A DNA stretch of 64,000 nt from Octopus bimaculoides. Its lineage: Eukaryota. The DNA lies in assembly GCF_001194135.2 (NCBI RefSeq), contig NC_068994.1, positions 38,325,134 through 38,389,133 on the forward strand. Direction: 5' to 3'. The notes below the pieces were generated by a model that worked only from the letters and a program-made list of their open reading frames with translations, was not told where the DNA came from and did no database searches. The translations under genes were made by a program, and so were the position numbers. Shown here in pieces: positions 25,162-59,957 of this stretch. The stretch's first letter is position 1; each line of letters opens with the position of its first letter.

Positions 25162-25382
25162 CAACAGTTATCAGATGTTTATACAGTTGTCACAGTACTA
25201 TTTCAAAGTTCTTATTGTTCTAGCTGGACTTATGAAAAGTTTGGTATGTGATAGTGTTATGCAGTTCTATCAAGTTGGGTGTATAGTATGTGTGTAGTAG
25301 CCAATGACAAGCTATTATTCCAATGCAAGAAAACGGATGTGCAGCCTCCAGTTCTTGCAGTTATTGATGGGCTGACTCACAC
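25162..25382 (-). promoter_or_regulatory. P1 non-coding leader exon and conserved promoter core
   Basis: Donor ctgttg|gtaagt at 25162; plus-strand core gtagccaatgacaagct...aaacggatgt...gggctgactcac (25297-25382), shared with four other copies. TSS not determined. Confidence 0.7.
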
Positions 25383-26417
25383 ACTAGTTCACTTAACTCC
25401 ACACACTAACATACACAAGTGTATGAGTGTATAAGTAAAATGTACAAAATTAAATCACTGGAAATATTTGATGTTCAGAATACTAAGGTTGAGAAATAGA
25501 CTAGCATGGAAAATTATAATATTAAATATTTGTGAGATGCTGGATAAAAATTTAAAAAATCTTTTCAGCAAGTTTTGTATTAAAGAGTAATAGACAATTT
25601 CTAAAGCCACGCTTAATATGGTAAGCCTAAGATGTATTCCCATAAAAATAAATATGGAAATAAAATATGAATTAAAAATACAAATGTTTAGAATTTTTAT
25701 AAAGTTACATTTAGGAATTACGAAACAGTAGCTCTAAATAAACAGATATTAAAGTAAGAGTGACTCGTCTTTAAAATGAATATTCGTAAGAAATTCATAA
25801 AATTTGATCGTTAGTCACAATTTTTCCCTTTTCATTAAAGATATTCATGTTATATAGTATCGTAACGCTAAGTTTGTCAAGGTATTTAGTATAAAGATAA
25901 GACGTAGTCGAAATATAAATATTCATTAAGAATATTTCGAATTTAATTCCCTAAATAGCCGAAAATATATATTTAACGCTAATTTAAGTAAATTTTATTG
26001 AAAGTTTCGTGATTATTTACGTTATCAAAATTTATATATTGAAGAAATTGTTCAGAAAGTTTCGTCGTTAATATATATATATTTTTTTTTTAATGGAAGC
26101 AATATTCAAGGGAGGTAACTGTTAAAAACTGTTATACAAAGCAATCAGTAATAGAAATCAGGAATTATATTACTGAACGGGCTTATATCTCACACACATT
26201 CCAGAATTCGTAAAACACGAGAGTGTGTGTGTGTGTGTGTGTATATACATACACACACACACACACACACCTGTGTTTACAAATTCTAAAATATACGGCT
26301 CTTGTTTTCTGTCGAAGATAAATTTTCAGGAATATCATTCAATACTTCAAAATAATGGTAGTAACCGTTTCTTTAGGGTTTAAGTAATACCTTATTGATG
26401 ACAATAATATTTTAATG

Positions 26418-26764
26418 TTAATGTAATGGTGTGGTGTTGTTTGGTGTAGATAGAATAGGTACCTGAACTATTGAAGGTACCTTTGGTAGTGTTGTTACTT
26501 TAGGTACAGCTGGTAGAGGTGGTTTATTATTTGAAGTAAAGAGACTTGTCATTGGCATTGTAGATGGTTGTTCAGTTATATGAGATGTGGTACCAGTTAT
26601 ATTCAAAGGTATTTGGTCAGGATGACAGACTGTGTTAGTATCAACGTTTGGATGGTAAGTATATCCATGGCATCCATTGTTATTATCTCCCCTCGATCTA
26701 TCCAGTGAATGTGAAAGTTGTTTTCTCCTATTCCATTTATGTTCAATTTGGTAACGACACAGAT
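26418..26764 (-). CDS. P2 last coding exon (DLCRYQIEHKWNRRKQL...KPPLPAVPKVTTLPKVP...TTPLH*)
   Basis: Acceptor tctag|atctg; open in phase 1 through to TAA at 26418; continuous with listed ORF 26418-26606. Confidence 0.85.
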
Positions 26765-27094
26765 CTAGAAATATATAGATTTATAGGTTATCTGATGCAA
26801 TGTACTGTTAACAGAATGGAGAACATTACATTTTTCTAGCCATGAAAATAAAGAAGTTCCCTCTGCAACCACATGGTTTCAAATTCAGTCTCACTACTTC
26901 GTACCTTGGGCAAATTTGTTGAACAGATCAACTAAAATTTTACAAGCAGGTTTAGTGGACGGAAACTAAAAGAAGCTCGATCAGTCTGTGTTCATGAATG
27001 CACGTGCGCGTGTGTGCACGCGCATGTGCATTTATCTTCTATAGTCACTTCTATTGTCAATAAATTATTCCCCTGATCTGAGCCTTCAAAAACA

Positions 27095-28300: not shown

Positions 28301-28451
28301 CTGGCAGTACCTCATAATGTCCAGCACTACCGACACTCCAGCCATGACCACTGTCAGTGTGAGAGGACAACGTTGACATTTCACTGATTTCGTCGGTACT
28401 GTTTAGCTCTCTGTAACCAGGAGACATACTTTCTTCTCTTGGAATAAACAT
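28301..28451 (-). CDS. P2 coding exon 2 (MFIPREESMSPGYRELNSTDEISEMSTLSSHTDSGHGWSVGSAGHYEVLP), 151 bp
   Basis: Acceptor tctag|ATG; donor ccag|gtaagt, phase 1; hand-translated. Confidence 0.85.
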
Positions 28452-28753
28452 CTAGAAACATAAAATAGATACATTGTATGCCATTATATTTCATCATGGT
28501 ATTATTGCCATTTATAATCTCTCATTTTGCTTTTAAGCTGAAATATTCTAGAAATCCTCATGTGAGTCAGTAAAGAAAATTAAAGAGTAATTTAGAATCT
28601 ACATTTTTAAGAAAAGAATTAAGCAAATGGAAAAATAATTTTTCTTTTATATTCTGCAACACAGCTTCAAAGGTTCTTGGTTAATTACAGCCAGCTTTAT
28701 TGTTAACACTGGAATGTTGAAAGGAGAAATATTTTAAAAGAAAATTATCTTAC

Positions 28754-31234
28754 CTGTTGATGATGTCTTAATGTTGGGTTATCCCATCTTTCACCTGGCA
28801 TGGTTCTGTAGTGAATATCTTCTCTATCTACCATTGGTTGTTGAGATTTCTTCAGGTTTTTCTCTATTGTGTACTGAACTCCAGGAGGAACACAAGTAGG
28901 ATCAAATGTGTATTTTGATTGGATGTTTAATGTAGGCGTAACTTTATGGTACATATCAACACTATTATAGTTGCTATCTGTCTGCTTCAGTCTATGAACT
29001 ATACAGATTGTTATAGAGATCACTATAACAATTGATACTATCACAGCTNNNNNNNNNNNNNNNNNNNNNNNNNNNNNNNNNNNNNNNNNNNNNNNNNNNN
29101 NNNNNNNNNNNNNNNNNNNNNNNNNNNNNNNNNNNNNNNNNNNNNNNNNNNNNNNNNNNNNNNNNNNNNNNNNNNNNNNNNNNNNNNNNNNNNNNNNNNN
29201 NNNNNNNNNNNNNNNNNNNNNNNNNNNNNNNNNNNNNNNNNNNNNNNNNNNNNNNNNNNNNNNNNNNNNNNNNNNNNNNNNNNNNNNNNNNNNNNNNNNN
29301 NNNNNNNNNNNNNNNNNNNNNNNNNNNNNNNNNNNNNNNNNNNNNNNNNNNNNNNNNNNNNNNNNNNNNNNNNNNNNNNNNNNNNNNNTTTGAAATAAGT
29401 GTTTCTCATTACCTCTGAGTATTTCATATGTGAGGAAGGCATTGTGTTGACTGTCTCTGTCAGAGGCCCTAACAACTATGATATCATGGTCAGAGTGGGG
29501 ATGGTAGTGGACATTAAGACTGAAAGGGTTAACATTAGGGAAACTGAAATAGGGAGCATTATCATTTAAATCCATAACCTCAACAACAACATTTGCTGTG
29601 TTCTCCAGTGATGGTGTTCCTTTATCTTTTACTAAAACCTTAAACTCATACATGTTCTTTTCTTCTCTGTCTAGTGACTCAGTTGTGGAAATAAATCCCA
29701 CATCAGATATCTGAAATGGTAGAATATCTTTTCCATTCGTCAACAGAGAATAGGTTAATTGTCCTCCATCTCCAATATCTGGGTCTGTAGCATTGACTTG
29801 TCCAACCGGGAAGGCTTTGTGTTCATTTTCATAGGTGAGAAACTTAAATATGTCCTGACTAAACTGAGGTTGTACATCATTTATGTCAGTGACCTCTATA
29901 GAAAACTGTCTCTCTACTTTTAATGGAGGTAAACCATTATCTTGACATTTAATGGTGAAATTAAATCTCTTCTCACTCTCTCTATCTATTTCACTCTTTA
30001 CAACAATTCTGTATTTCTTTTCAGACATTGAGATTAACTGAAGGTATTTATTTTGTAAATGACATTTCACTTGTCCATTTACGCCATTGTCATTGTCAGT
30101 AACTTTAACATATGAGACAAAGCTGTGACGTTTTGCTGCTTCTGAAATTACAGCTGTGTTTCCAGTTGACTCTATAACAAATTTGACTTTGATTTTGGGA
30201 GGATTGTTAAGGTGACTGATTCCAGTTACAAGAACAGTAGCAGCTGAAGACCTAGGAGTGTTATCATTATCTCTGGCTTCAACAATTATTTTGTAGGATT
30301 TTCCAAACTGAAATTCTTTTGTAATAAAGACGTCTCCAGTTACTTCATCTAATTTAAAACATTGTTTAAAATTACTTGGTGTTTTAGCATTAAACACATA
30401 AGAAATTCTTCCATTTTCCCCTGCATCTAAGTCGGTAGCAAACAACCTTACAATAGGTTTGTTTATTTCCTGTGTATCGTTTATAGTGACATTGTAGATA
30501 TTCTCTGAGAATATAGGAGAGTTATCATTTTCATCCACCACCAATATTTTTAAATTCAATGATCCTTCCTTTGGTGGAGATCCACCATCTGTGGCAATTA
30601 ACTGAAGATAATAAATATCCTTTGTCTCTCGGTCCAAGTTTTCTTCTAAAATCAGTTGCAGAAAATCATTGCCATCTGTTTTATTAGAAACCAACAATTT
30701 GAAAGGAATATTTTCTTCTTTGAGTCGATAAAATAGTTTAGAATTTTGAATACTGATATCATTATCAATTGCATTTGGAATTATCTTTCTTCCTAAGGAT
30801 ACATTTTCGTCAAATTGCATATTAACATCCTTGCGAATAAACATCGGATAATTATCATTGACATCTTCTATTATAACTTTGATTTCTAATATCCTGATAA
30901 CAGAATGGCCATGTTGAATAGCTATTTCTAATATCCTGAAACATTCCACATTATAATGACATAGAGTTTCTGCATCCAATATGGCAGCTGTATATATTTG
31001 TCCTCCGGGTGTAACATTAAACAACTGAACACTTCCATCTGTATTACCCTGGAGTATTTTAAATTTCAGTATGTCGCTGTTATCTTGAGACTGCATATTA
31101 TCCAGTAAATGTGTATCACTGACAATATCTCCAATATAACTGTGTATATCATTGTTCTCTTTCACATGGTAGATATGATCTACACACTGGCAGCTGCCAG
31201 CCATCAACAACATCAACAATACCACGGACAACAT
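28754..31234 (-). CDS. PCDH: Protocadherin P2, large coding exon (gap in EC6)
   Basis: ORF 28745-31297 with six-EC architecture and TM; acceptor ttttcag| at 31339; likely ATG 31234 (an in-frame ATG also at 31297); donor CAG|gtaag at 28754. Confidence 0.93.
29049..29388. other. Assembly gap; others at about 9924-10096, 27801-27810, 39160-39169, 44424-44544, 46032-46262, 53699-54126, 55335-55715, 62124-62718
   Basis: N runs; four of nine fall in EC5-EC6 coding sequence of P2-P5. Confidence 0.98.
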
Positions 31235-33395: not shown

Positions 33396-33628
33396 CAACA
33401 GTCATTTGTTGTTTATATAGTTGTTACTGTACTGTTTCAGTGTTATGATAACAAAGTTGTAGTAGTAGCAGAAGTTTAGCATGTGTTAGTGTTATACAGT
33501 TCTATCAAGTTGGTTGTGTAGTATGTAATGTGTGTTGTAGCCAATGACAAGCTGTCTATTATTCCTATGCAAGGAAACGGAAGTACAGCCTCCAGTTTTT
33601 TTGCAGTTAATGATGGGCTGACTCACAT
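33396..33628 (-). promoter_or_regulatory. P2 leader exon and conserved promoter core
   Basis: Donor ctgttg|gtaagt at 33396; core ccaatgacaagctgtc...gcaaggaaacggaagtacagcctccag...gggctgactcac at about 33537-33628. Confidence 0.7.
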
Positions 33629-34482
33629 ACAATATCACTTAGGCCCACATACACGTGTGTGTGTGTGTGTGTGTTAGTAGAGTGTACATAAATGAACAAG
33701 GAAGAAATATCTAAAATGGAAAGGGTAGGCAATAAATTCAGTATGGAAAATGTTATTTCTAAGTAATGATTATATAGTTTATAAACAATATAAAAAAATT
33801 CATATTAGCAAGTTTACTTATGATACTAAATTGGCATAATCTGCAAAAAAAAAAAAAAAAAATCTATAAAATGAATGTAAAATTATTCACTATGAACTGT
33901 TTACATTAATAATAATATGCCAGGTTATCTAAAGAAACTTTTTAGAAAATACGAAACTGTGGCTGTCAATAAACAAATGTCTCTTGAGTAAAGATTTGTA
34001 TGATTGAAAACTGACTTAGTAAAATAAACTCAAAGAGTAATATTTAGGAATCATCTAAATACAAAGCTGTCATTTTAAATCAAAAGTGTACATTTAATTT
34101 TGAATGCAGTGACAGTTTCAAAATAATCATTAATATTTAAAAATTTTAGCAAGAAATAAGTACATAGAAACAACTAAGAAAGTAAACTGCAAAAAACTAT
34201 TTCTTTGCCAGGAAACTATAACATGGATCTTTAATTTTAGTATTTTCATTGATATCTTAAAATCTGGTAAAATGTTTGGGAGAAACCTGTTTTGACTAAA
34301 TGTTAGATGAAATATCAATAAGTTTCTAAAAATTACTATTTATGATGCACAATGAATACAAGTTCCATTGTGGAAGGAAATACTCCCATAATATAAATAT
34401 TTTCCACTAATTTATCCCATTCAGTGAATTCATTGCCTGTATTGTGTAAATGGTAGCTTGGAATATTCTTGAAATTGTATAA

Positions 34483-34802
34483 TTAGTTGTTTCTTGAAGG
34501 TAAAGGTGGAATTACCTCAGGTATTGAAAGTATGTTTGGTAGTGTTGTTACTTTAGGTACAGTTCGAAGAGATGATTTACAATCTGAAGTAAACTGACTA
34601 GTTACTGGTATTTCATATAGTGGTTCAGTTTGGTTAGATGTAGTACCAATTATAGTCAAAGGTATTTGCTCAGGAAAACTGGAAGTGTTAATACCAATGT
34701 CTGGTTGATAAGGATAGCCATTGTTATTACCTCCACTTGATTTCTTACGAGTGTATGGCAGTAGATTTCTCTGTGTATGATCACTTTGATAACCGTATTT
34801 GT
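34483..34802 (-). CDS. P3 last coding exon (DKYGYQSDHTQRNL...VPKVTTLPN...LPSRNN*)
   Basis: Acceptor ttttcag|acaaa at 34802; ORF 34483-34842; homologous to the last exons of paralogs. Confidence 0.8.
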
Positions 34803-37810: not shown

Positions 37811-37958
37811 CAGGCATTTCCTCAAATTGTCCAACACTACTGACGCTCCAGCCATGGCCATTATCATTGCAAGCTGATAATGGTGACATATCACTGAATT
37901 GGTGGGTGCTGTTTAGTCCACTGTAACTTGGAGACATATTTTCTCTTGGAACAAACAT
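37811..37958 (-). CDS. P3 coding exon 2 (MFVPRENMSPSYSG...DNGHGWSVSSVGQFEEMP), 148 bp
   Basis: Acceptor tttcag|ATG; donor cctg|gtaagt, phase 1; part of ORF 37704-37976. Confidence 0.85.
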
Positions 37959-38374
37959 CTGAAAACACAAATCCATAATTAGGATATAGTAAAAAGGGTT
38001 GAAATATATGCGATATGTTATATATAACTAAAATAATTAATAATGGTTTTTGAATTATGTACACAGCTAGCAATTTTGTTGGGTCGGGGTGAAACTTGTT
38101 CATAATAACTATTTTTTATTTAACCAACCTCAGAGAGATAAAAGGCAAAGTTGGTCTTGCCAGGAGAAATACAACAAAGCATTTTCTCTAACTAGCCTCT
38201 GACACTAAACCCACCAACCTGATGAACACATAATTATAATCGATTAAAAATATTAATACAAAATGCACATTGTAGATAGAGCAGTTGAATTCTCATAGTA
38301 ACATGCAATCAAATGAAAACATGAGAAAAATCTTTATCTACATTTCAGAGAAAAAGATACTGAAAGCACCTCAC

Positions 38375-40739
38375 CAGTTGATGTCTTCTTAAAGTCAGAT
38401 CATCCCATCTACCACCTGATATAGCTGAGTAGAGAAAAATTTTTCTGTACACCATTTCTTCTTCAGATTTCTTCAGATCTTTCTCCATTGTGTTCTGAAC
38501 TTCAGGAGCAACACAAGTAGGATTGGACGTATATCTTGATTGCATATTTAATGTTAATGTAGGTGAAACGTTGTGGAACATAGCTCTACTATTATAGTTG
38601 CTATCTGTCTGCTTCAGTCTATGAACTATACAGATTGATATAGAGATCACAATAACAACTGATACTATCACAGCTGCTATAACAATAACAATCATCACAT
38701 TCAATTGGAGACCATTACTTGATTCTGTTGTTGTCTTTGAAGGGGTCTTAAACATCTTTGTGTTGTTACTAACTGTTAGAGTCAAAGACAATGTTGTTGT
38801 TGATGAGAAAACTGGATTCCCACTGTCTTTCACACCTAATTCCAGTTCATAGAATCCAGCATCATTTTGGTAAAGTGAGCGAGCGAAAGATAAGACACCA
38901 GAGTGATGGTTCATTTGAAATAAGTGTTTCTCATTACCTCTGAGTATTTCATATGTGAGGAAGGCATTGTGTTGACTGTCTCTGTCAGAGGCCCTAACAA
39001 CTGTGATATCATGGTCAGAGTGGGGATGGTAGTGGACATTAAGACTGAAAGGGTTAACATTAGGGAAACTGAAATAGGGAGCATTATCATTTAAATCCAT
39101 AACCTCAACAACAACATTTGCTGTGTTCTCCAGTGATGGTGTTCCTTTATCTTTTACTANNNNNNNNNNGTGACTCAGTTGTGGAAATAAATCCCACATC
39201 AGATATCTGAAATGGTAGAATATATTTACCATTAGATAACAAAGAATAGGTTAATTGTCCTCCATCTCCAATATCTGGGTCTGTAGCATTGACATATCCA
39301 ACAGGGAAGTCTTTGTGTTCATTTTCATAGGTGAGAAACTTAAATATGTCCTGAGTAAACTGAGGTTGTACGTCATTTATATCAGTAACCAGCATAGAAG
39401 ATTCTTTCTCCACTGTCAATGGAGGTAAACCATTATCTTGACATTTAATGGTGAAATTAAAGCTCTTCTCACTCTCTCTATCTATTTCACTCTTGACAAC
39501 AACTTTGTATTTCTTTTCAGAAATTGAGATTAGCTGAAGGTATTTATTTTGTAAATGACACTTCACTTGTCCATTTTCTCCACTGTCATTGTCAATAACT
39601 TCGACAAAAGCAACAAAGCTGTGAATTTGAATTGCTTCTGAAATGAGAACTGTGTTTCCAGTTGACTTGAAGAGAAATTTGACATCAATGTTTGGTGGAT
39701 TATTACGATGTGTGACACCATTTACCTGAACAATGGCTGTTGAGGACATAGGTGTATTACCACTATCTCTAGCTTCAACAAGCAATTTATAGAATTTTCC
39801 AAACTTGAATTCTTTCGTTATGTGCATTTCTCCTGTTATTCCATCTAAAGTAAAGCATTGCTTAACTTTATTTTGTGTTTTAGCACTAAAAGCATAAGAA
39901 ATTCTTCCATTTTCCCCTTCATCTATATCTGTTGCAGACAGTCTTACAATAGGCTTGTTCATTTGATGTGTGTCATTTACAGTTATATTATAAATATTCT
40001 GGATGAATACAGGGAAATTATCATTTTTATCTTCCACTAATATCTTTATATCTAGTACGCCTTCCTTTGGTGGTGTTCCTTCATCTTTGGCAATTAACTG
40101 AATTCTATAGATGTCTTTTATCTCACGATCTAAGTTACTTTCTAAATTTAGTTGTAATAAATTACTTCCATCTGTTTTATTAGAAACAAACAATTTGAAA
40201 GAAATACCTTCATACTCTACGAGTTGATAAGAGATTTTAGAATTCTGAATACTAACATCATTGTCAATTGCATTTGGAATTATTTCTTTTGTTCCAGCCA
40301 ATGCATTTTCGTCAAATTGTATTTGAAATTCATTAATTGGAAACAATGGATAATTGTCATTGACATCTTCTATCATAACTTTGATTTCTAATATCCTGAT
40401 GACAGAATGGCCATGTTGAATAGCTATTTCTAATATCCTGAAACATTCCACATTATAATGACATAGAGTTTCTGCATCCAATATGGCAGCTGTATATAGT
40501 TGTCCTCCCTGTGTAACATTAAATAACTGAACACTTCTATCAGTACCACCCTGGTGTATTTTAAATGTCAGTTTGTTGTTGTCATCCTTCGTCTGTATAT
40601 TATCCATTAAGTGTGTATCGGTGACAATATCTCCAATATAGCTGTGTGTATCATTATTCTCTTTCACATAGTACATATGATCCACACACCAGTAGCTGTT
40701 AGCCATCAGCACCACAATCAACAAAATCATTGACAGCAT
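38375..40739 (-). CDS. PCDH: Protocadherin P3, large coding exon (10-N placeholder gap in EC5)
   Basis: ORFs 39147-40805 and 38345-39232 join across the gap; paralogs show about 40 nt missing there. Acceptor ttacag| at 40841; ATG 40739; donor CTG|gtgag at 38375. Confidence 0.92.
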
Positions 40740-41902
40740 GACTACAGTCTTCAATAATGTTACCAAAAGGGATAGTAAGTGGATAACGATAATGAAATAT
40801 ATCAAACAAATGTTGCACCCTCAGTTTTCTTCTGTCACCTCCTGTAAGCATGTAAATTTATATTTCATTAAGCAAGAGAAAATTATAATATTTGCAGCAA
40901 TGATATAAATAGATTAATAATTCCATAAACATACTGATTTATATCAAAATCTCTGCATTATCTTTCATCTGTCTGTCTCAATGCATTTTCATCAATATTA
41001 TGTACTCTTTCACATATAACAATATTGTGTAATACTAGAAATATTAAGTAAATGCGTTTTATCATGAGTTAAATCTTTTTGCATTAGATTCTTCTACTCT
41101 TCAACAATTTTTGAACCATAATAATCTACAGGTCTGATATTATTAAACAGATGAGGAAAAAAATTTACATATGCAGGACTCATTTATTTCAAGTTGCCAC
41201 CCATGAAAGTGGAAACTATACTCAAATTAATTCAACACATGTGATATATACTTGAAGTTTTGAGCTGTAAATGAAAACTGTACAGTGCATGTGAATTTAC
41301 TAAATGGAGATCATATTGTTAAGTAGATCATCTTGAGTGAAATTCAAGACAGTCACAACTTTTAAATAATATACTTATAAATGCCTTGCTGTTGACTGCA
41401 AAGCTTTTGTAGTTTGAATAATTATGAATTTGGCTTTTTAACAATCTGCTGAAAATGTACTGTAGAAATCTTTAAATTATGTAGCCACAAAATTACCAAA
41501 TTAAAAATGAAAACACAGTTATTTAAACTACATGGTTTGAATTACTGCCCTTCGATACCACCCAAGTGAAAAGAAAAAATATTTGTGATAAACTTCTAAG
41601 TCTTTGTAATTATCATATATTCATTCTAGTCACTTACAATTAACACTTTGATTGCAGTTAAAATTATTTTCTAATCAAAGATTAACCCTCTCACACAGAT
41701 TCAAACTTTCATTAATTCTAGAATTCTCTGGAACACTAAAATGATAGATTCTAAAATTTAGTGCAATTATACCTTCTCTATTATTTACTATTCTTGATAG
41801 TACAATTTACATTCCATGTACGACTTCTGGAAATCATTATGAAATACAAATATTAGAAAATAACTATTTTTAAATCTCACGAGAGATATTCAGCAATAAT
41901 AC

Positions 41903-42402: not shown

Positions 42403-42648
42403 CATGAGTTGTTTGTTGTTTGTACTGGTGTTACTGCACTATTTGTGTGTTCTGGTTACAAAGTTGTAGTAGCAGCAGCAGCAGTCCTGAATAGGTTGGT
42501 ATGTGATAGTACTATATAGTCCTATGAAGTTGGTTGTTAGTACGTCATGTTTGTTGTAACCAATGACAAGCTGTCTATTTTTCCCATGCAAGGAAATGGA
42601 AATACAGCCTCTAGTTCTTGCAGTTAATAATGGTCTGACTCACAGACT
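42403..42648 (-). promoter_or_regulatory. P3 leader exon and conserved promoter core
   Basis: Donor ctcatg|gtaagt at 42403; core ccaatgacaagctgtc...gcaaggaaatggaaatacagcct...ggtctgactcacagact at about 42556-42648. Confidence 0.68.
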
Positions 42649-45358: not shown

Positions 45359-45568
45359 CTGGAAAAATTTATTACATAGTGCAGTATACAGTTACAATAA
45401 TAAGAAAGATTCTAATAATCTATGGTGTTTCATGTTTTGTAATAGAATATTTTAAGATATGAAATTATGAAGAACATTCTGAAATACTTATTTCTTCAAG
45501 ATAAACTATACACAAAAGCAGAATTTTCCCCAAAAGATTTCCAAACACATGAAAATTAATGAACTCAC

Positions 45569-47792
45569 CTGTTGTTTTCTTGAAGTTAGATCATCCCATC
45601 TATCAGCTGACATAGTTCTGCAGTGAATATCTTTCCTGTCTTCTATTGGTTGTTGAGATTTCTTCAGATTTCTCTCCAATGTGTTCTGAACTTTAGGATG
45701 AACACATGTGGGATCAAAAATATATTTTGATTGTATATTTAATGTAGGTGTAACCTTGTGGTACATATCAACACTACTATTATAGTTGCTATCTGTTCGC
45801 TTCAAACCATGAACTATACAGATTGATATAGAGATCACTATAACAACTGATAGGATCACAGCTGCTATAACAATAACAGTCATCACATTCAATTGGAGAC
45901 CATTACTTGATTCTGTTGTTGTCTTTGAAGGGGTCTTAAATATCTTTGATGTGTTGTTACTAACTGTTAGAGTCAAAGACAACATTGTTGTTGATGACAG
46001 AACTGGATTACCACTATCTTTCACACTTAGTNNNNNNNNNNNNNNNNNNNNNNNNNNNNNNNNNNNNNNNNNNNNNNNNNNNNNNNNNNNNNNNNNNNNN
46101 NNNNNNNNNNNNNNNNNNNNNNNNNNNNNNNNNNNNNNNNNNNNNNNNNNNNNNNNNNNNNNNNNNNNNNNNNNNNNNNNNNNNNNNNNNNNNNNNNNNN
46201 NNNNNNNNNNNNNNNNNNNNNNNNNNNNNNNNNNNNNNNNNNNNNNNNNNNNNNNNNNNNNNTATCTGAAATGGTAGAATATCTTTTCCATTAGATAATA
46301 GAGAATAGGTTAATTGTCCTCCATCTCCAATATCTGGGTCTGTAGCATTGACATATCCAACAGGGAAGTCTTTGTGTTCATTTTCATAGGTGAGAAACTT
46401 AAATGTGTCCTGACTAAACTGAGGCTGTACATCATTTATGTCAGTGACCATCATAGAAAACTGTTTCTCTACTTTCAATGGAGGTAAACCATTATCTTGA
46501 CATTTAATTGTGAAATCAAATCTCTTCTCACTCTCTCTATCTATTTCACTCTTGACAACAATTTTGTATTTCTTTACAGACAATGAGATTAGCTGAAGAT
46601 ATCTGTTTTGTAAATGACACTTCACTTGTCCATTTACTCCACCGTCATTGTCAGTAACTTTGACATATGCAATAAAGTTGTGAATTTGAGTTCCTTCTGA
46701 AATGACTGCTGTGTTTCCAGTCAACTTTAAAATGAATTTGACATCAATGTCTGGTGGATTATTAAGAAGACTGACACCGTTTACAAGAACAGTGGCTGTT
46801 GAGGACCTTGGTGGATTACCATTATCTCTAGCTTCAACAAACAATTTATATATCCTTCCGAACTGAAATTCTTTCTTCAGAAACAAATATCCAGTTACTT
46901 CATCTAATCTGAAAAATTGTACAGCATATTTTGATATGATGGCATTGAAAAAATAAGATATTAATCCATTTTCTCCTTCATCTAAATCTGTAGCTGACAG
47001 CTTTGCAATAGGTTTGTTTAACTGGTGTGTGTCATTTACAGTGACATTAATAGTATTTTGGGAGAACACAGGGAAATTATCATTAATATCTTTAATAATT
47101 ATTTTTATGTGAAGTACACCTTCCTTTACAGGTGATCCTTTATCTCTGGCAATTAACTGAATATTATACATGTCTTTTGTCTCACGATCTAAGACATTTT
47201 CTAGATTTAGTTGCAATAAATCAGAGCCATCCAAATTTTTAGAAACAAACAATTTAAAAGGAATATCTAAATCTTTGATCTGATAAGTGATTCTGGAATT
47301 CTTAATACTGACATCATTATCAATGGCATTTGGAATTATATATTTGGTTCCTATTAAATCATTTTCATCAAATTTTAAATGAAATTCCTTCTTTGGAAAC
47401 TTAGGATAATTATCATTGACATCATCTATTACAACTTTGATTTCTATTATCTTGAGAAAGGAATGGTCATGTTGAACTGCTATTTCCAATATTCTGAAAC
47501 ATTCCACATTATATTGGCATAGAATCTCTGCATCCAATATAGCAGCAGTGTACAGTTGTCCTCCAGGTGTAACATTAAATAACTGAACAGCTCCATCAAT
47601 ACTACCTTGTAGTACATTAAATGTCAGTTTGTTACTTTTATCCTGAGACTGTATATTATGCAGTAACTGTGTATCAGTGACAATATCTCCAATGTAGCTG
47701 TGTATATCCTTGTTCTCCTTCACATGGTAGATGTGATCCACACACCAGCAGTTGTCAGCCATCAACAATACCAACAAAACTATATATAACAT
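45569..47792 (-). CDS. PCDH: Protocadherin P4, large coding exon (gap over EC5-EC6)
   Basis: ORFs 46014-47807 and 45506-46291 flank the gap; acceptor ttttcag| at 47880; ATG 47792; donor CAG|gtgag at 45569. Confidence 0.92.
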
Positions 47793-50044
47793 GGCTACAG
47801 TCTCCAAGGTAATATATATATGTAATGTTGATGGAAACTATCAAAGAATTGTGACTTCTTGAATTTTCTTCTGTTGTCTCCTGAAAACATGTAAAGACGT
47901 ATAAACTTATTATGCATAAGAAAGGATGTAGTAATCAAGAAAATGCATATAATTTCCAACTGAAAGTAATGAGATATTGTATGATAGAATTACAAATTAT
48001 GCCAAGTTGTCAAGGTGACAGAATCATTAGCACACCAGACAAAATAATTAGCAGCATTTTGTCCATCTTTACATTCCAAATTCAAATTCTTCCATAGTCA
48101 ACTTTGCCTTTCATCCTTTCAGGATTGATAAAATGCCCATTGAACAGTACAGCTGATGTAATTGATTTACACCTTCCTCTATAATTGTTGACCTTGTGCC
48201 TAAATTTGAAATCAAATTACAAGTCATGCCAAAGACTCTACATATCATTGCATTCTCTCTCTCAATATGCATTTCCATCAACATATAGTGTGAACTCTTT
48301 CAACCAGTAGTTTAATACAATAGAATTTTATGATATTTCCCTTCCACACAAATAAGTTGTTTTTGGTGTGTAAAACTATTACATAAATGGTCTTGTCTCT
48401 TATTCTGTAACAACTATTTCTTAAAATTTCATCATTTCAGGAACAACTTCATCACTAAAACAAATGAAGGTAAGATATTTATATATGTTTGACTGGCTTA
48501 CATCTGTTAAATTATCTTAGATTCTTATTAAGTAAGCTTTAAAAAAAGTCTACACTGACACTTAAAGAACCCTTTTCAAATATCTGTCAAAACTCCCTCC
48601 AGCTACAAACTGCCATAATATTTAAAAAGAAGACACATTGGAAAATATGTATATCAAAGTACAGTATAACACACAAAAAATAAAAATGTAATCATCATGG
48701 CCAAAACTGCCTTTCATCATTGATTTGTTCAATCAGAAACAACTTGGGATTAAAAGGCAGTTGTGACTCAAAGTATAATTAGCCTTTCCACTGAAATGAT
48801 ATTTCTAGAAATTCTCTGCAATTAATCTGATGGTACATGTATCTTTTCAAAATACTCTCATAAATATTTTATGATTAGCATTAAGTTTTGCAGTCTGAAG
48901 AACAACCAGCTGAGGTTTTTAGCAATCTGCTATAGAGAGAAGACCATAATCGTTGCTCTAACAGGCTAAAAGCTCAATATGCAACAGGGGTTGTATACTA
49001 GTGCCATACTTTACGAGTTTCACAACACTATTTATGCCAGGATAGCACAAAAGTATCTTCTACTAAAATATCTGTTACTAAACGTACTTATTCTATGCCA
49101 CAAGGCTATGAGTCAAGTCACAACAATGAAGCTGCAACCTTTACAGTTAGACATTATTGATAATTTTTTAGATGTGATTCATAAACTTTTACTGAGATGA
49201 AAATTGAATAAATATTTTAACATTTTCTTCCATTACTAAAATGGACTCAACTCATTTAGACTTGCTTTTCTGATTCATGTTAAACCAACACACTGGATGG
49301 TTGAGATCAAGGATGTGATTTGGTTAAACACACCACATGAATCTTTTTATCATACACTTGTTTCAGTTATTAGACAGTGGCCATGCTGGGGCACTAGCCT
49401 GATAATATATTCTCTATTTACAACCTTAGTACTCCCCAATCGTTTTATTCCAAAAGTTATTAAATTACAGAACATTTAGAATGAGTCTCTGTTTCATAGA
49501 TATTATTAGTTTTTAAGACTCATACTTACTGAGTTACATTTGGAAAAAAAATTTGAAAAATAAACACAACAAAATGAGTTATTCCCCTTTAATATTGACC
49601 TAAAAAAAAAAAGAGAGAACAAGCAATAATTGCCAAAATAGCCTGAGCTGAAGAGATAATTTCCTTCATTACATCTACCTTCTAATTACAGATATTTAAC
49701 CATTCTGTTATATTTAACACCATTCTCTCATTAACATTAGCCATTCCAATCATAGTAAAACCTCCAGTAATTCCAGAATTTACAGCAAGAGTAAAATTAC
49801 AAATTTTAAAACTTAGTGAAATTATAGCTTTCCTAAAATTTACTATTCAAGATAGTCTTTGAGAAATACCATTTATATTCCAGATCTGATATATGGAAAT
49901 CGTGATGAGGTACAAATATCTGAATAGAATAACATTCTATTATTACATCCTGTATGTACCAATAGAATGAACTTGTGAATAAATAAAACAGTTTAAAAAC
50001 ATACAAACGTTTACACAACAGAATAATTTCTAATAAGTACTTAC

Positions 50045-50287
50045 CAACAGTTTCAGCTGTTTATATAGCTGTTGCTATGCTGTTTCAGTGTTTTGGCAAC
50101 AAAGTTATATTAGTAGCAGAAGTTTTGAGTAGTTTGGTATGTGATAGTGTTATGTAGTTCTATGAAGTTGGCTGTGTAGTATGTAATGTGTGTTGTAGCC
50201 AATGACAAGCTGTCTTTTATTCTAATGCAAGGAAACGGAAGTACAGCCTCCAGTTCTTGCAGTTAATGATGGGCTGACTCACAGACT
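50045..50287 (-). promoter_or_regulatory. P4 leader exon and conserved promoter core
   Basis: Donor ctgttg|gtaagt at 50045; core at about 50195-50287. Confidence 0.7.
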
Positions 50288-51339
50288 GATTTACTTAAGC
50301 CACACACACTTACATATATATGTGTATGTGTGTTAGTACTTTCATAAATGAATAAAGAAGAAATGTCTAATGATTAGAATGAAGGGGACAGGCAATAAAT
50401 TCAGTATGGAAAACATTTCTAAATAATGATGATATATACGAGTAAAATTATGGTAAATATGTATAATATTTGTAACTTTATCATACAAATAGTACATAAC
50501 TTTAAAAAAGTTATGATGAAAGCAAAGTAAAATTGATTAGTATAAAAATTATGTTAATATAATAAAACTCCAGTGACATCACAGAGAAAAACTTTTTAGA
50601 AAATACGAAACTATGGCTATCAATAAACTAATAGTTGTTAGCTGGAAATCCGTATAGCAGAACATTAAAGGGAATGCAGAATGGGATAATGCGCATAAAG
50701 AATGATACTTGAAAGTTGCATAATCTCATTGGTGCATTTGTAAAATTAAATCAGCAGACTTCATTTTCAATTTGATAGATTTTCTCAGAATTAATAATGA
50801 TATCCAAGAGTTTCATAAAGAACAGAAGAATAAGGAGTCTACTAACAGATATAACTGGTACAAGCTATTGCAGTAAAATAAACTCTAAATCTCAGATATT
50901 GTGACAAGACAGTAACAGTTAGGATTATTCGAAAATGTAAATTTATAGCATTATAAAATACAAATTAAAAGCTTCATGAGATTTACTATTTAAGAAATGG
51001 TTTAGCAAAGATATTAGAATGTTGAATAAAATGTTGCTGTATTTAGTTACAAACTATTATGTACTGTGCCAAAATTTCTATAAGGTTAACTTTATTTTAT
51101 CAATTCCAAATGAGATTAAATACAAGCCAAGCAATTGGGCTGATTTAATGTTCTATTAAATCTAAAAACAGAAACTGAAAACTAACAGAAACTAATGAAT
51201 GAAACATTATCAATCAGTGTTTTACTATGACAAGAAATATTGCTGTATCATTAATATTTTCTATTAATGTATTCCTTACTGGAAATGTATTGCCTGTCTT
51301 GAGTAAATAATGCTTTGTTATATTCCTGAAGTTAGACTA

Positions 51340-51665
51340 CTAAATGTTTGTTGCAGATAGAGGAGGAGGAGGTACCTGGGATGATGAAGGTACCTTTGGT
51401 AGTGTTGTTATTTTGGGTACAGCTGGCAGAGATGGTTTACAGTCTGAAGTAAACTGACTTTTCACTGGTACTGTAGAATGTTGTTCAGTTATGTTAGATG
51501 TAGTCCCAGTAATAGTCAAAGGTGTTTGGTCAATCGAACAGGAAGTGTTATCAACATTGGGTCGATAGTGATATCCATATTCGTTATCTCCCCTTGATCT
51601 GTTGAGTGTATTTTGAAGTTGATTTCTTCTATTCCATGTATGGTCACTTTGATAACGACACAGAT
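51340..51665 (-). CDS. P5 last coding exon (DLCRYQSDHTWNRRNQL...LPAVPKITTLPKVP...SATNI*)
   Basis: Acceptor ttttag|atctg at 51665; ORF 51340-51810. Confidence 0.85.
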
Positions 51666-52049
51666 CTAAAAGTATCAAGATTTTACATAAATATACTTTG
51701 GAATCAACGATTAGCCTCATTAACATTTCTTTCATGCATAAAATTATTCTACATCTGTGTAGATTTGTTTGAAAGTTCGCCTCAATTTCTCTGTAAACCA
51801 GTGTTATCAATAAATTATCAAGCTGTTGATTAAAAATTCAAAGATAGAAGTAGTTGTTTTAGCCTAATTTAGGGGTACTGATTTCAGATTCAAAACCAGC
51901 TTTCACTCATCACCTTTAGTTTTTTAGATATACATTATTATGATTTTGCGACAATTCACATAACTATATATATATGACCAATTTTTATTTTGCTTTCCAG
52001 ATTTTTGTGATACATATCTCTGCAAAGGCTTCAGACACTTCAGAACACT

Positions 52050-53131: not shown

Positions 53132-53279
53132 CTGGCAGTTCCTCATAGTGTCCAGCACTACCGACACTCCAGCCATGACCACTATCAGTGTGAGATAATG
53201 TTGACATCTCACTGAGTTGATCGGTATTGTTTAGCTCTCTGTAACCTGGAGACATACTTTCCTCTCTTGGAATAAAGAT
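53132..53279 (-). CDS. P5 coding exon 2 (IFIPREESMSPGYRELNNTDQLSEMSTLSHTDSGHGWSVGSAGHYEELP), 148 bp
   Basis: Acceptor ttttag|atc; donor ccag|gtaagt, phase 1; one-codon deletion keeps frame; hand-translated. Confidence 0.85.
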
Positions 53280-54245: not shown

Positions 54246-54837
54246 ATTTAGCCAAGTAAACTGAGCACAGGAACAATAATGAACAGAGTATGTAATTCAA
54301 TATGAAAACTGCATCTGAGTTCTGTAAGAACTATCAAATTGTATTTGATAGTTCACCAATATTATACAACCAAAATACAAAAAATTATTTACAGATAAAA
54401 ATAGCAAACATGTTTTATTTACATCTATTGTTTACTGCACTTGTGTTTATATAATAATACTAGTAGAGATTAACAATTATTTCAAATAGTGTAAATATAA
54501 TATTTCTCCAACCATAAAGATTGTGAAAGTCAATAAATATTTGTTGCTTCTCAATTTCATTTGCAGCACTCATATGGCGCTTTGCTACAAAAAATGAACT
54601 GAAAAGAGTCAGAAAATAGATGCAGAGAAGATACAGGTACAATAGGGGGAACAATTTAAATGTAAAATAGTGTGATTTGTATATAAAGAAAACAATTTTT
54701 AAATATTTTCTTAAGATGATTTCTCTGAAATATATATATACAAAGCAGTTATACTTCATGCAGGAACATATAAATAGATAAAACATGCAAGAACAACTCT
54801 TTTTCTTTGATTTTCCAAATAAATATAAGCAACTCAC

Positions 54838-57385
54838 CTGTTGAGGTCTTTTAAAGGTCAGATCATTCCATCTATCAGCTGACATATTCCTGCAGTGAAT
54901 ATCTTCTCTGTCTACCTTTGGTAGTTGAGATTTCTTCACATTTCTCTCCATTGTGTAGTGAATTCCAGGAGGAACACAAGTAGGATCAAATATATATTTT
55001 GATTGGATGTTTAATGTAGGTGTAACCTTGTGGTACATATCAACACTACTATCATAGTTGCTATCTGTCTGCTTCAGTCTATGAACTATACAGATTGATA
55101 TAGAGATCACTATAACAACTGATACTATCACAGCTGCTATAACAATAACAATCATCACATTCAATTGGAGACCATTACTTGATTCTGTTGTTGTCTTTGA
55201 AGGGGTCTTAAATATCTTTGATGTGTTGTTACTAACTGTTAGAGTCAAAGACAAAGTTGTTGTTGATGACAGAACTGGACGGCCACTGTCTTTCACACCT
55301 AATTCCAGTTCATAGAATCCGGCATCGTTTTGGTNNNNNNNNNNNNNNNNNNNNNNNNNNNNNNNNNNNNNNNNNNNNNNNNNNNNNNNNNNNNNNNNNN
55401 NNNNNNNNNNNNNNNNNNNNNNNNNNNNNNNNNNNNNNNNNNNNNNNNNNNNNNNNNNNNNNNNNNNNNNNNNNNNNNNNNNNNNNNNNNNNNNNNNNNN
55501 NNNNNNNNNNNNNNNNNNNNNNNNNNNNNNNNNNNNNNNNNNNNNNNNNNNNNNNNNNNNNNNNNNNNNNNNNNNNNNNNNNNNNNNNNNNNNNNNNNNN
55601 NNNNNNNNNNNNNNNNNNNNNNNNNNNNNNNNNNNNNNNNNNNNNNNNNNNNNNNNNNNNNNNNNNNNNNNNNNNNNNNNNNNNNNNNNNNNNNNNNNNN
55701 NNNNNNNNNNNNNNNAAATCCATAACCTCAACAACAACATTTGCTGTGTTCTCCAGTGATGGTGTTCCTTTATCTTTTACTAAAACCTTAAACTCAAACA
55801 TGTTCTTTTCTTCCCTGTCTAGTGACTTAGTTGTGGAAATAAATCCCACATCAGATATCTGAAATGGTAGAATATCTTTTCCATTAGATAATAGAGAATA
55901 GGTTAATTGTCCTCCATCTCCAATATCTGGGTCTGTAGCATCAACATATCCCACAGGGAAGTCTTTGTGTTCATTTTCATAGGTGAGGAACTTATATATG
56001 TCTTGACTAAACTGAGGTTGTACATCGTTTATGTCAGTAACCAACATTGAAAATTGTCTCTCTACTTTCAATGGAGGTAAACCATTATCTTGACATTTAA
56101 TGGTGAAATTAAATCTCTTCTCACTCTCTCTATCTATTTCACTCTTGACAACAACTTTGTATTTCTTTTCAGACTCTGAGATTAGCTGAAGATATCTATT
56201 TTGTAAACGACACTTCACTTGTCCATTTTCTCCATTGTCATTGTCAATAATTTCGACAAAAGCAACAAAGCTGTGAATTTGAATTGCCTCTGAAATGAGA
56301 ACTGTGTTTTCAGTTGACTTTAAGAGAAATTTGACATCAATGTTTGGTGGATTATTACGATGTGTGACACCATTTACCTGAACAATGGCTGTTGAGGACA
56401 TAGGTGTATTACCACTATCTCTGGCTTCAACAGTTATTCTATACATTTTTCCAAATTGAAATTCATTCGTTATAAACATTTCTCCTGTTGTCTTATATAA
56501 TTTAAAACACTGTTTGATTTTATTTGGGGTTTTAGCACTAAAAATGTATGAAATTTTTCCATTTACCCCTTCATCTAAATCAGTAGCCAACAACCTCAGA
56601 ACAGGTTTGTGTATCTGATGTGTGTCATTTATTGTCACATTGTAGATATTTTGGGAAAATACAGGGGAATTATCATTTTTATCCTCCACTAATATTTTTA
56701 TATCCAGTATACCTTCTTTTGGTGGAGATCCCCCATCTGTGGCAATCAATTGAAGATTATAAATGCTTTTAGTCTCACGATCTAAGTTACTTTCTAGAAT
56801 TATCTGTAATACACTAGATTCATCTGATCTCTTCAAAATGAACAATTTGAACGGAATATGTAAATCTCTTAGCTGATATTTGATTTTTGAGTTCTGAATA
56901 CTGACATCATTATCAATGGCATTTGGAAGTATTTCTCTTGTTCCTGTCAATACGTTTTCATAGAGTTGCAGGTGAAATTCATTAACTGGAAAGAAGGGAT
57001 AATTGTCATTGATGTCTTCTATTATAACTTTGATTTTTAATATCTTGATAAAAGAATGACTATGTTGAACTGCTATTTCCAATATCCTAAAACATTCCAC
57101 ATTATATTGGCACAGAATTTCTGCATCCAGTACGGCTGTTGTAATTAGGTGTCCTTCAGGTGTAACATTGAATAACTGAATACTTCCATCAGTACCACCC
57201 CGGATAACATTAAATGTAACTTTGTTGCTATCATCCTGAGTCTGTATATCATCCAGTAAGTGTGTATCAGTGACAATATTTCCAATAAAACTGTGTATGT
57301 CAATGTTCTCTTTCACATGGTAGATATGATCCACACACCAGCAACTGTCAGCTGTCAACAGTACCAACAAAACTATGAATAACAT
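54838..57385 (-). CDS. PCDH: Protocadherin P5, large coding exon (gap in EC6)
   Basis: ORFs 55310-57400 and 54460-55740 flank the gap; tandem acceptors at about 57484 and 57492; ATG 57385; donor CAG|gtgag at 54838. Confidence 0.92.
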
Positions 57386-59720
57386 GGCTTCAGTCCTCAA
57401 TTCTGTTGCAAGGATATGAATGTATAATGTTGACGGAATCTATCAAAAAATTGAGACTTCTTCAATATATTCTTCTGTTTTCTCCTGTAAACCTGTAAAA
57501 CATGTAAACTTATTATGCATAAGAAAGGATGTAGTAATTAAGAAAACTCATATAATTTGTAAAATTATAAATTATGGCAAGGTGGCAGAATCATTAGCAC
57601 ACTAGACAGAATTATTGGCAGCATTTTGTTCATCTTTACATTCCAAATTCAAATTCTTCCATAGTTAACATTGACTTTCATCCTTTTGGTGCTTATAAAC
57701 AAAGCAGCCATTGAACAGTATGGTCAATGTAATTTATTTACCCCTTCCACCAAACCTGCTGGCCTTGTGCCAAAATTTCAAGTCAAATTACAAGTTATGC
57801 CAAAGACTCTACAAATCATTCTAATCTTTCTCTTGGCATGCATTTCCAGCAACATATAGTATAAACACTTTCCACCAGTAGTTTCAGGAACCTACTTTAT
57901 CATTAAAACAAATGAAGGAAAGATATTTACATAAGGTCAACTGGCCTAGAATTTTATGATACTATTTTCCTCCTACACAAACAAGTTATGTTTTGATATC
58001 TAAAAATATTACATCACATGTCTGATCTCTTATTTGGCAAAATATCTTAAATTTTCATCATTTTAGAAACCTAATTTATCACTTCAGCAATCGAAAAGAT
58101 ATATACATAAATTTCACTTGTCTACATCCCTTAAATCATTTAATTTTCTCATTAGGTAAAATAAAAAATAGCATCTACACTGACACTCAAAGACCCCCTT
58201 TACAAATATTTGTTGAAACTGCTTTTTCACAAACTGTCATAATATTTAAAAAGGGAACACATTGGATGATATATATCAAAGTCCACAAAGAAACGGAAAA
58301 CTCCATAAAAAAAAAAAAAAAAAGAGATATGGTTATTATGGTTAGAACTGCCTTTGATCATAGATCTGTTCAATCAGAAACAATTTGGAAATAAAAGGCA
58401 GCTGTGACTCATGTAACGTATGATTAGCTTTTCCACTGAAATCATATTTCTATAAATTATCCATAATTAGTCTGATTAATTAATGATGAATGCATTTTCC
58501 AGAAATGCATTTATAGATACATTATGGTCAGCAGTAACTTTTGTAGTCTGAAGATATCCAGTTGAGCTTTTCAGCAATTTGTTGTAGATAGAAAAATCAT
58601 AACTTTTGCTCTAACATGCTAAAAACCTCATATGCAATAGGGATTCATTTTCCATTTTTCTTACTCTATACTAATGCCATACTTAACAAGTTTCACAACA
58701 CTAGTTGTGCCAGGATATTGCGAAAATATCTTTCTGATTATTCTACTACTAAGAATATTTATAGTAGGCCAGAAGGATATGCCTCAAGCTACTACAATGA
58801 AGTTGCAGCCTTTACATTTAGACACAATTCATAAGTTTTTAGACATGGTTCATAAACTATTGTTGAGATGGAAATTTTAAAAATTATTTATAGTGTGTTC
58901 TTCCATTTCTCAACTCATTTCAACTTGTTTTTTTTTTGTTTGTTTTTTTTTTTTTTGCTTCATTTTAAAACTAACCACTGTATGATGGATTAAGGATGCC
59001 ATTTGCTTTAACATCATGACCTGGATCTTTCTATCTTTTATCCATTTAAGTCATAGTTCTGAGGCCATACTAAGGTACCACCTTGGTACTTCTAATGGGT
59101 TTGCACTTTTACAAAATTAATTTTAATTCTAGACTTTTACTATTGGTTTCTGTTTCAGATATCGATCGTTTTTCAGATTCATAGTTACTGAGTTACATTC
59201 TGTGATTAGCTTAACTGCAAAAAAAAGCTTCTGAGAAACCGAAAATACTAACAGAACCCTATCTAAATGAGTTGTTCCCCTTTGCTCATGACCTACAAAA
59301 AGTATCAAAACAAAACATTTGCTTAACAGTCTAAGCTGAAAACATAATTTTCTTCATCACATCTCCCTTCTAACTACAAATATTTAACCACTCTGTTATA
59401 TTTAACATCATTCTCCCATTAAACATTAGCCATTCTAATCATAGTCAAACCGCCAGTAATTCCAGAATTTGCAGCAAGAGTAAAATTACAAATTTCAAAA
59501 ATTTAGTGAAACTTTCCTGAAATTTACTATTCTAGATTGTCTTTAAGAAATACGTTTATATCATGACATGGTACAAATATCTGCGAAAAATTCTAACATT
59601 AAGTAAACTTATTCTATTATTACATCCTGTATGTAATAATAGAATGAACTTGTGAATAAATAAAACATTTTAAAACATACAAACGTTTACACATCAGAAT
59701 AAGTTTTAAAAAGAACTTAC

Positions 59721-59957
59721 CAACAGTTGTCAGTTGTTTATGTAGCTGTTGCTGTGCTATTTCAATGTTCTGGCAACAAAGTTATATTAGCAGTAGAAGT
59801 TCTGAGCAGTTTGGTATGTGATAGTGTTCTATGAAGTTGGTTGTATAGTATGTAATGTGTGTTGTAGCCAATGACAAGCTGTCTTTTATTCTAATGCAAG
59901 GAAACGGAAGTACAGCCTCCAGTTCTTGCAGTTAATGATGGGCTGACTCACAGACTG
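59721..59957 (-). promoter_or_regulatory. P5 leader exon and conserved promoter core
   Basis: Donor ctgttg|gtaagt at 59721; core at about 59864-59957, nearly identical to the P4 copy. Confidence 0.7.

Follow-up and report, generated by a model that had tools for sequence, protein, structure and literature searches.

The upstream block of a protocadherin array

Cephalopods possess an independently expanded set of ~170 protocadherin (Pcdh) genes. We analyzed a 64,000-nucleotide stretch of Octopus bimaculoides DNA (NC_068994.1, positions 38,325,134 to 38,389,133; here the window, numbered from its first letter) that carries a tandem array of such genes, P1 to P6, and we focused on a block of about 94 bp that recurs upstream of them. 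All Pcdh open reading frames (ORFs) of the window are on the minus strand, and a block was found 1.8-3.6 kb upstream of the main coding exon in five of the five genes whose upstream DNA falls within the window. A 22-mer derived from the block, searched with up to three mismatches, gave exactly five matches, all on the plus strand (25358, 33604, 42621, 50260, and 59929), and none in 100 dinucleotide-preserving shuffles. The mean column identity of the five copies was 87% across 177 aligned columns. No assembly gap lies in or beside any of them, the nearest being at 27801, 2.4 kb from copy 1. An earlier sequence-only reading of this DNA had reported five copies of the block, and these were borne out, with the core within ~5 bp of where they had been placed. 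The plus-strand consensus given in that reading is present as well, but the plus strand is the antisense of the minus-strand Pcdh genes, relative to which all five blocks are sense oriented. The cores are as follows.

25292..25381, minus strand: core block P1, 90 bp; GACA spacer shortened by 4 bp, ETS-like site changed in both of its GGAA cores
33532..33627, minus strand: core block P2, 96 bp
42551..42644, minus strand: core block P3, 94 bp; ETS-like CpG lost (CCG to CCA), CCAAT flank altered (GGTTAC)
50190..50283, minus strand: core block P4, 94 bp
59859..59952, minus strand: core block P5, 94 bp

Orthologous tandem clusters were sampled from Octopus vulgaris (L001, L006; OX597827.1, 6.93-7.06 Mb, CAI9732423-CAI9732436), O. 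bimaculoides (L002; CM046614.1, ~38.42 Mb), and Argonauta hians (L003). The closest proteins were 75-78% identical for O. vulgaris, Octopus sinensis, and O. bimaculoides and 66-68% identical for A. hians. A profile search (nhmmer) returned 16 strong copies of the module (E = 4e-42 to 6e-33); nothing else in the ~450 kb of sampled octopod DNA matched strongly. Across the window and the clusters of the three species, exactly one sense-oriented module accompanied each main exon with sampled upstream DNA (13/13), and three more modules lay at locus edges. The modules of the clusters were 0.7-3.3 kb upstream of the main exons, except for one degenerate copy at 7.7 kb. This O. vulgaris copy (L001:20363-20600) has lost both TGAGTCA and the ETS-like CpG and is far from its coding exon compared with the usual ~2-3 kb; the promoter may be decaying or have been re-wired.

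In gene orientation, each unit begins with ~150 bp of moderate conservation, followed by a purine-pyrimidine tract, the core, 130-148 bp of weaker conservation, and a splice donor. The tract is an alternating (CA/TA/TG)n run that most of the 16 copies, those of Argonauta among them, carry 15-60 nt upstream of the core. The longest alternating run had a median length of 18, compared to 6 in random 80-nt windows (95th percentile, 13), and as a part of the promoter, the tract could form Z-DNA or exclude nucleosomes. In the window, these tracts lie directly 5' of the cores.

About 25400-25440, minus strand: alternating purine-pyrimidine tract, P1
About 33640-33680, minus strand: alternating tract, P2
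About 42655-42700, minus strand: alternating tract, P3
About 50300-50336, minus strand: alternating tract, P4
About 59970-60005, minus strand: alternating tract, P5

The core consensus in gene orientation reads TGTGAGTCAGCCCATCATTAACTGC AAG AACTGGAGGCTGTACTTCCGTTTCCTT GCATTGGAATAATAGA CAGCTTGTCATTGGCTACAACAC. Three sub-blocks of 23-27 bp each are identical between the Octopus and Argonauta consensus sequences, and all 7 fixed differences between the two genera are confined to two spacers. The pentamer ATTGG occurs in 16/16 copies and, as TCATTGGCTAC, forms a CCAAT box with NF-Y-type flanks in 13 of them (plus-strand reading, TAGCCAATGA). Tandem ETS-like cores that include the only CpG of the block (TTCCGTTTCC) were likewise found in 13/16 copies, as was TGAGTCA; TAACTG was found in 12/16. 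By eye, we take TGAGTCA(GC) to be a site of the AP-1 or CNC/Maf type, CATCATTAACTG to be homeodomain- or Myb-like, ACTTCCGTTTCC, which holds the CpG, to be tandem ETS-like, and TTGTCATTGGCTAC to be a CCAAT box with NF-Y-type flanks, assuming YRRCCAATSR as the NF-Y consensus. A further conserved core site, AACTGGAGGCTGT, carries no factor assignment. The CCAAT box, the ETS-like site (altered in P1 and P3), and TGACTCA had all been named in the sequence-only reading and are supported by the counts over copies. The TALE-like TGACA..TGTC pair that it had also named did not hold up, given that its distal half (GACAGC) is deleted in P1 and absent from 4/4 Argonauta copies. TTGCAT is also absent from all Argonauta copies.

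No conserved TATA box was found. A TATATAT run upstream of the core and a TATAAA-like run ~20 nt before the donor were considered and rejected, as neither was conserved or sensibly placed. The promoters had been described as having no CpG-island character, and we agree: the observed/expected CpG ratio was 0.13-0.26 within 100 bp on either side of the block centers, with no CpG island at any module. Across the whole window the ratio was 0.25 at 34% GC, a strong depletion that extends over the Pcdh array, its promoters included.

Leader exon and sequence conservation

The block had been placed just 5' of the donor of a leader exon, 1.6-3.4 kb upstream of the coding exon, and this arrangement is well supported. 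The donor TTG|GTAAGT is invariant, occurring in 16/16 copies, and in the five window copies it lies 130-148 bp past the core. Intron 1 of the window genes would be 1.65-3.4 kb long. At its other end, every gene examined in the window and the clusters of the three species has a pyrimidine tract and an AG acceptor (mostly CAG) 7-45 nt before the ATG. In the five-way alignment in gene orientation, sequence conservation drops 3' of the leader donor. The putative non-coding leader exon bodies, given from the end of the core to the last exon base, are listed here.

25162..25291, minus strand: putative leader exon body P1; donor GT at 25161-25160
33396..33531, minus strand: putative leader exon body P2; donor after 33396
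42403..42550, minus strand: putative leader exon body P3; donor after 42403
50045..50189, minus strand: putative leader exon body P4; donor after 50045
59721..59858, minus strand: putative leader exon body P5; donor after 59721

The segment between the CCAAT box and the donor is markedly strand asymmetric (A.41, C.25, G.09, T.25) and contains 8 ATG triplets, compared to 21.5 (mononucleotide) to 36.7 (first-order Markov) expected, and 77 CAT triplets; no ATG depletion was seen in the flanking upstream and intronic DNA. These features suggest a sense-strand 5' untranslated region (5'UTR) that avoids upstream start codons, which supports the leader exon and would place the start site in this segment or upstream of it. 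Among the 16 copies, the distance from the CCAAT box to the leader donor downstream is 127-165 nt, and in the five window copies it is 144-162 nt. A CCAAT box is typically found ~60-100 bp upstream of the transcription start site, and a start site at that distance would thus leave a leader of about 45-100 nt. As for transcripts, an exact look-up of the window protein gave no match, and a homology search with the N-terminal 220 amino acids returned three NCBI proteins only and no transcript contigs. The cluster members of the closest homologues all derive from genome annotations, and the one Logan contig retrieved (L005) is an unrelated GC-rich Pcdh mRNA without similarity to the leader.

The core was far better conserved than its flanks, in agreement with the earlier reading, in which the block was alignable where the flanking DNA of P1, P2, and P3 was not. 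Within the window, mean pairwise identity was 0.90 in the core compared to 0.72 in the rest of the leader and 0.67 in the 150 bp upstream as well as in the initial 100 bp of the intron. The refutation proposed for this claim was a block no more identical than its neighbors at equal duplication age, and the youngest pair shows the opposite. The unit shared by P4 and P5 aligns almost throughout, so duplication age is controlled, and windows spanning 50267-50178 (90 bp) were 100% identical, whereas the whole 4.6-kb alignment, mostly intron 1, was 76.5% identical. Two further P4/P5 identity peaks in intron 1 (48013-48217 and 49342-49396) were rejected as dispersed repeats, given that they have many matches on both strands at unrelated octopod loci.

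A contrast of this kind was also seen between genera. Pairwise identity between Octopus and Argonauta was 0.85 in the core and 0.99 at the donor, compared to 0.55 in the rest of the leader, 0.45 in the intron, and 0.33 in the upstream 150 bp. At the four-fold degenerate sites of the adjacent main exon, identity was 0.70-0.74, and the two consensus cores matched at 87/94 positions (P = 7e-7 against the synonymous-site rate). Across one whole inter-exon interval, the module and leader were the only unique non-coding DNA conserved between species. Core identity within the window (0.90) was not above that between the window and the O. bimaculoides locus (0.91), which was taken as a between-species comparison. 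Gene conversion is therefore not needed to account for the conservation, and it could not by itself explain the conservation between genera.

Gene units and other protocadherin loci

The main coding exons of the array are listed below.

19410..21814, minus strand: P1 main coding exon; no assembly gap; exon end ...HHQQ|GT
28751..31201, minus strand: P2 main coding exon; contains gap 29049-29388
38378..40748, minus strand: P3 main coding exon; contains gap 39160-39169
45569..47801, minus strand: P4 main coding exon; contains gap 46032-46262
54835..57394, minus strand: P5 main coding exon; contains gap 55335-55715
63220..64000, minus strand: P6 main coding exon; truncated by the window end, upstream region outside the window

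The mechanically called ORF start of P1, at 21836, falls inside the pyrimidine tract of the intron 1 acceptor. The acceptor (...ttgcag|) is 14 nt before the ATG at 21800 (MNKILLLL...), so the former start would be intronic and the latter is the likely true start. The sequences flanking the gaps in P2-P5 are colinear with a homologous protein and match it in order and strand; the nominal gap lengths do not equal the numbers of missing residues, and thus frame continuity across these gaps is not asserted. Homologous proteins have 860-964 amino acids compared to 811 for the P1 ORF, and tblastn placed the extra C-terminal residues on two additional exons that lie downstream of each main exon.

28302..28451, minus strand: P2 exon 2, gene specific (MFVPREESMSPGY...; tblastn)
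Exon 2 equivalents: 18964-19104 (P1), 37812-37961 (P3), 45209-45361 (P4), 53133-53279 (P5), 61727-61873 (P6)
26421..26765, minus strand: P2 exon 3, gene specific (DLCRYQ... tail; tblastn)
Exon 3 equivalents: 34486-34803 (P3), 43671-43982 (P4), 51394-51672 (P5), 60878-61135 (P6)

Two other inter-unit segments that appeared to be conserved non-coding DNA in a self-comparison were rejected, given that they correspond to the gene-specific coding exons 2 and 3 (the ~400-bp segments being exon 3). Judged by sequence, each unit would be a complete gene with a leader exon, a main exon, and its own exons 2 and 3; tblastn found no shared constant exons in the window, each unit having its own exons 2/3, as described for cephalopod Pcdhs (PMC9068888). 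The module lies 860-1,110 bp past the aligned end of exon 3 of the upstream gene. In the P4 unit, P4/P5 identity drops where AATAAA signals occur (51149 and 51096), which suggests that the 3' end of the upstream gene precedes the module by ~800 bp.

The 3' half of the main exon (EC5-EC6-TM) is far more alike among paralogues than the 5' half (78-82%). The segment 19406-20190 is 92% identical to 63219-64000, and 29389-29630 is 98% identical to 63759-64000. Furthermore, a stretch of more than 200 amino acids (DINDVQPQF...TLTVSN) is identical in 6 of the 7 O. vulgaris and O. sinensis paralogues retrieved, with one residue different in the seventh. This pattern looks like homogenization by gene conversion, and EC6 and the cytoplasmic parts of the vertebrate clustered Pcdhs are homogenized in that way.

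Just downstream of P1 is an inverted pair of retrotransposon fragments (13457-14497 and 15695-16758; 75% identical, GC 0.44), with reverse-transcriptase-like ORFs at 14143-14436, 15670-16065, and 16913-17792. P1 is the only gene without a detectable exon 3 (tblastn within the window), and no further Pcdh gene lies beyond it; this region may mark where the array ends, or it may be an insertion by which the 3' end of P1 was displaced. A tandem repeat with a period of ~26 bp (44335-44907) flanks the gap at 44424-44545, between exons 2 and 3 of P4.

The sequence-only reading had the module preceding every protocadherin, and this was too broad: we found it in a single tandem subfamily and, in diverged form, at two other loci, and did not detect it at three more. 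At the O. vulgaris locus L007, whose gene is 47% identical in protein, two diverged modules lie 3.3 and 4.9 kb upstream of two main exons. They share CTTC[CT]GTTTCC, GGGAAC, and TCATTGG[CT]TGCAGCAGATATTACATAC, along with a leader of similar length that ends in ATAG|GTGAGT. The O. sinensis locus L010 carries one diverged module, in which TGACTCA and ATTAACT are kept and CAGCTTGTCATTGGCT is unchanged (E = 2e-27 with a broader profile). Four other Pcdh genes (those of L004, L008, and L009, and P0017 in L010) showed no module in the 10 kb upstream of them, L004 being heavily gapped. The diverged modules at L007 and L010 suggest, by sequence comparison, that the promoter architecture predates this tandem subfamily, although it is not universal in the sample.

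L004, L008, and L009 hold one gene each, with far-away terminal exons. Some of the non-tandem Pcdh genes (L004, L008, L009, and L010) have annotated ranges of 39-97 kb, with a normal main exon of 2.4 kb and tiny terminal exons far downstream. These long-range gene models reflect either real long introns or annotation artefacts. Other annotated models run from one gene into the next. The last exon of P0001 (L001:20624-20666) lies ~30 nt past the leader donor of the next gene, and the P0007 model connects exon 3 of a gene with exons 2 and 3 of the gene that follows. Read-through transcripts have been reported in octopus PCDH arrays (PMC9712504), with which the isoforms of P0001, P0017, and P0007 that run into the next gene are consistent.

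A probable shared promoter, its alternatives and its meaning

We consider it probable (roughly 0.7) that the ~94-bp block is a proximal promoter joined to a 5' leader exon and that the two were passed on through duplication and preserved by purifying selection. The block would lie directly upstream of, or overlap the start of, a short non-coding leader exon, and splicing across the 1.65- to 3.4-kb intron would join this leader to the large coding exon. Tandem duplication would have copied the promoter and leader together with the main exon and the gene's own exons 2 and 3 as one unit, after which purifying selection would have kept the block near constant as a fixed array of transcription factor sites, providing a common transcriptional input to all paralogues of the subfamily. 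The one-to-one sense relation of block to gene, the conserved donor and acceptor, and a conservation above that of synonymous sites across octopod genera were all observed; we infer the action of the block as DNA, i.e., as a promoter, rather than as RNA, as well as the position of the start site and the bound factors. The promoter module of the sequence-only reading is thus the best explanation of what was found: one copy per gene, 5' of a donor, and conserved beyond its neighbors. The part of that reading that drew a parallel to the vertebrate CSE (conserved sequence element) stands for position only, as set out below.

Several points weigh against this model. The transcription factor assignments are consensus matches by eye, and sites have been lost from the copies of P1 and L001:20441, although the ORFs of the corresponding genes are intact. 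Nor can the 16 copies be counted as independent: those of Argonauta have fixed differences in common, suggesting duplication within that lineage or concerted evolution. In addition, the L010 module contains (at 49394-49403) the last two codons of the annotated upstream gene P0017, following an acceptor, and so this copy may be transcribed, possibly by read-through. More generally, part of the core could be transcribed, i.e., lie inside the leader.

The last point leads to a different possibility, that the block is the 5' part of the transcribed leader with a role at the RNA level (translation control, stability, or localization) and that the promoter lies in or upstream of the purine-pyrimidine tract. 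The core consensus contains no ATG, the homologous O. sinensis module carries an annotated exon, and in some copies a TATA-like run occurs ~45 nt upstream of the core. Start sites upstream of TGTGAGTCA would favor an RNA-level role, and our placement of the start site is indirect. However, the TATA-like run is not conserved, and there was little sign of RNA structure: the consensus fold of 13 copies was weak (-8.25 kcal/mol), with 0/15 predicted pairs compensatory, and the window had 0 Rfam matches. The sub-blocks also read as classic double-stranded DNA sites, such as the CCAAT box with its NF-Y-type flanks, and the rest of the leader, which would be expected to be under the same RNA constraint, is far less conserved (0.55 versus 0.85). 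We therefore regard this alternative as unlikely. The idea that the block has no function, and is residual identity after recent tandem duplication or the product of gene conversion, has in its favor that the genes are tandem duplicates, that the 3' halves of the coding exons are strongly homogenized within species, and that gene conversion has been proposed for cephalopod Pcdh arrays (PMC9068888). This idea is already largely refuted, and we give it very little weight, given that the core exceeds the synonymous level between genera (0.85-0.93 versus 0.72), flanks of equal age have decayed, and the core identities of 0.90 within the window and 0.91 to O. bimaculoides show no sign of local homogenization. 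Least probable of all is an interspersed repeat or transposon fragment near the genes by chance. The introns do hold dispersed repeats, but the true repeats of the same intron match many places on both strands, whereas the 16 strong and 3 diverged copies are all sense oriented, with no copy elsewhere in ~450 kb. The 16 strong copies and the two at L007 are either followed downstream by a Pcdh main exon or situated at the edge of a locus; for the L010 copy, the downstream gene is beyond the sampled DNA.

A further proposal, compatible with a promoter, is that the block is a functional analogue of the CSE of the vertebrate Pcdh alpha, beta, and gamma clusters, i.e., a docking platform through which tandem promoters compete for a shared distal enhancer, with stochastic or mutually exclusive choice. 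The two systems are alike in having a short, near-identical element before each tandem unit that is conserved beyond its surroundings across distant species. In addition, the single conserved CpG in the ETS-like site, amid CpG-depleted DNA, could allow a methylation lock, and single-cell work has reported ~19 PCDHs per cell, a mixture of ubiquitous and cell-type-specific ones (PMC9712504). The octopus element, however, has no sequence similarity to the CSE. The CTCF consensus that we used (CCASYAGRKGGCRSY) had no match with two or fewer mismatches in the DNA up to 600 bp from any of the 16 modules; the three such matches in the window (18457, 32697, and 47745) are not at a module, the best match inside the core had 5/15 mismatches, and neither CGCT nor AGCG occurs in the core. 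The octopus element is located 1.8-3.6 kb from the ATG, behind a leader and an intron, whereas the vertebrate CSE is ~200 bp upstream of the variable exon. The octopus promoters have no CpG island, and each gene is a whole duplicated unit that has 3' exons of its own (our data; PMC9068888), unlike the vertebrate variable exons that are spliced to constant exons. The octopus element also covers one subfamily rather than the whole repertoire, and stochastic choice, established for the vertebrate clusters, is conjectural in octopus. No inverted module copy or candidate shared enhancer was found in the sampled DNA, and identical promoters fit plain co-regulation equally well. Without a CTCF consensus, CGCT core, CpG island, or shared constant exons, the resemblance is positional only, in that there is one element per tandem unit, and sequence, bound factor, and gene architecture offer no such parallel; we consider a functional analogue of the CSE doubtful.

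The shared promoter that we favor has closer parallels elsewhere. Like NF-Y-dependent TATA-less proximal promoters, it has an invariant CCAAT pentamer with NF-Y-type flanks, ETS-like and TGAGTCA sites within ~80 bp, and no conserved TATA box, all in a compact cluster upstream of a 5'UTR exon. It differs in that identity at 87/94 positions between genera is unusually high for an ordinary proximal promoter and in that factor binding in octopus is predicted only. Other tandem receptor families also have shared promoter motifs, such as the O/E and homeodomain sites of olfactory receptor genes and the motifs of the alternative promoters of chelicerate Dscam. These families likewise comprise paralogues for cell-surface diversity with a common promoter grammar inherited with their duplications, but they share short degenerate motifs only, whereas the octopus array keeps a contiguous block of ~94 bp nearly base for base. 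We found no description of a shared cephalopod Pcdh promoter element in papers on octopus Pcdhs, on the squid, octopus, and Amphioctopus genomes, on two single-cell atlases, and on the 3D genome, and an earlier mention in Albertin et al. 2015 or Wang & Ragsdale 2017 is possible.

In summary, the block is most likely the shared promoter of a tandem gene family, unusually well conserved. If it is merely that, it would be an ordinary though unusually well-conserved product of tandem duplication. A more far-reaching outcome, which we think improbable, is a CTCF-independent invertebrate counterpart of the CSE: an NF-Y/ETS/bZIP platform that would be switched on or locked off in each neuron, e.g., by methylation of the one conserved CpG in its ETS-like site, such that the promoters would vie for one common activator and any one neuron would express part of the array. 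If this were true, such a counterpart, with its relatives at L007 and L010, would be a general feature of part of the octopod Pcdh repertoire. The 94-bp element, with its candidate sites, provides a concrete handle on the regulation of cephalopod Pcdhs, and given that transgenic cephalopods are now being reported, reporter work on this element may be feasible.

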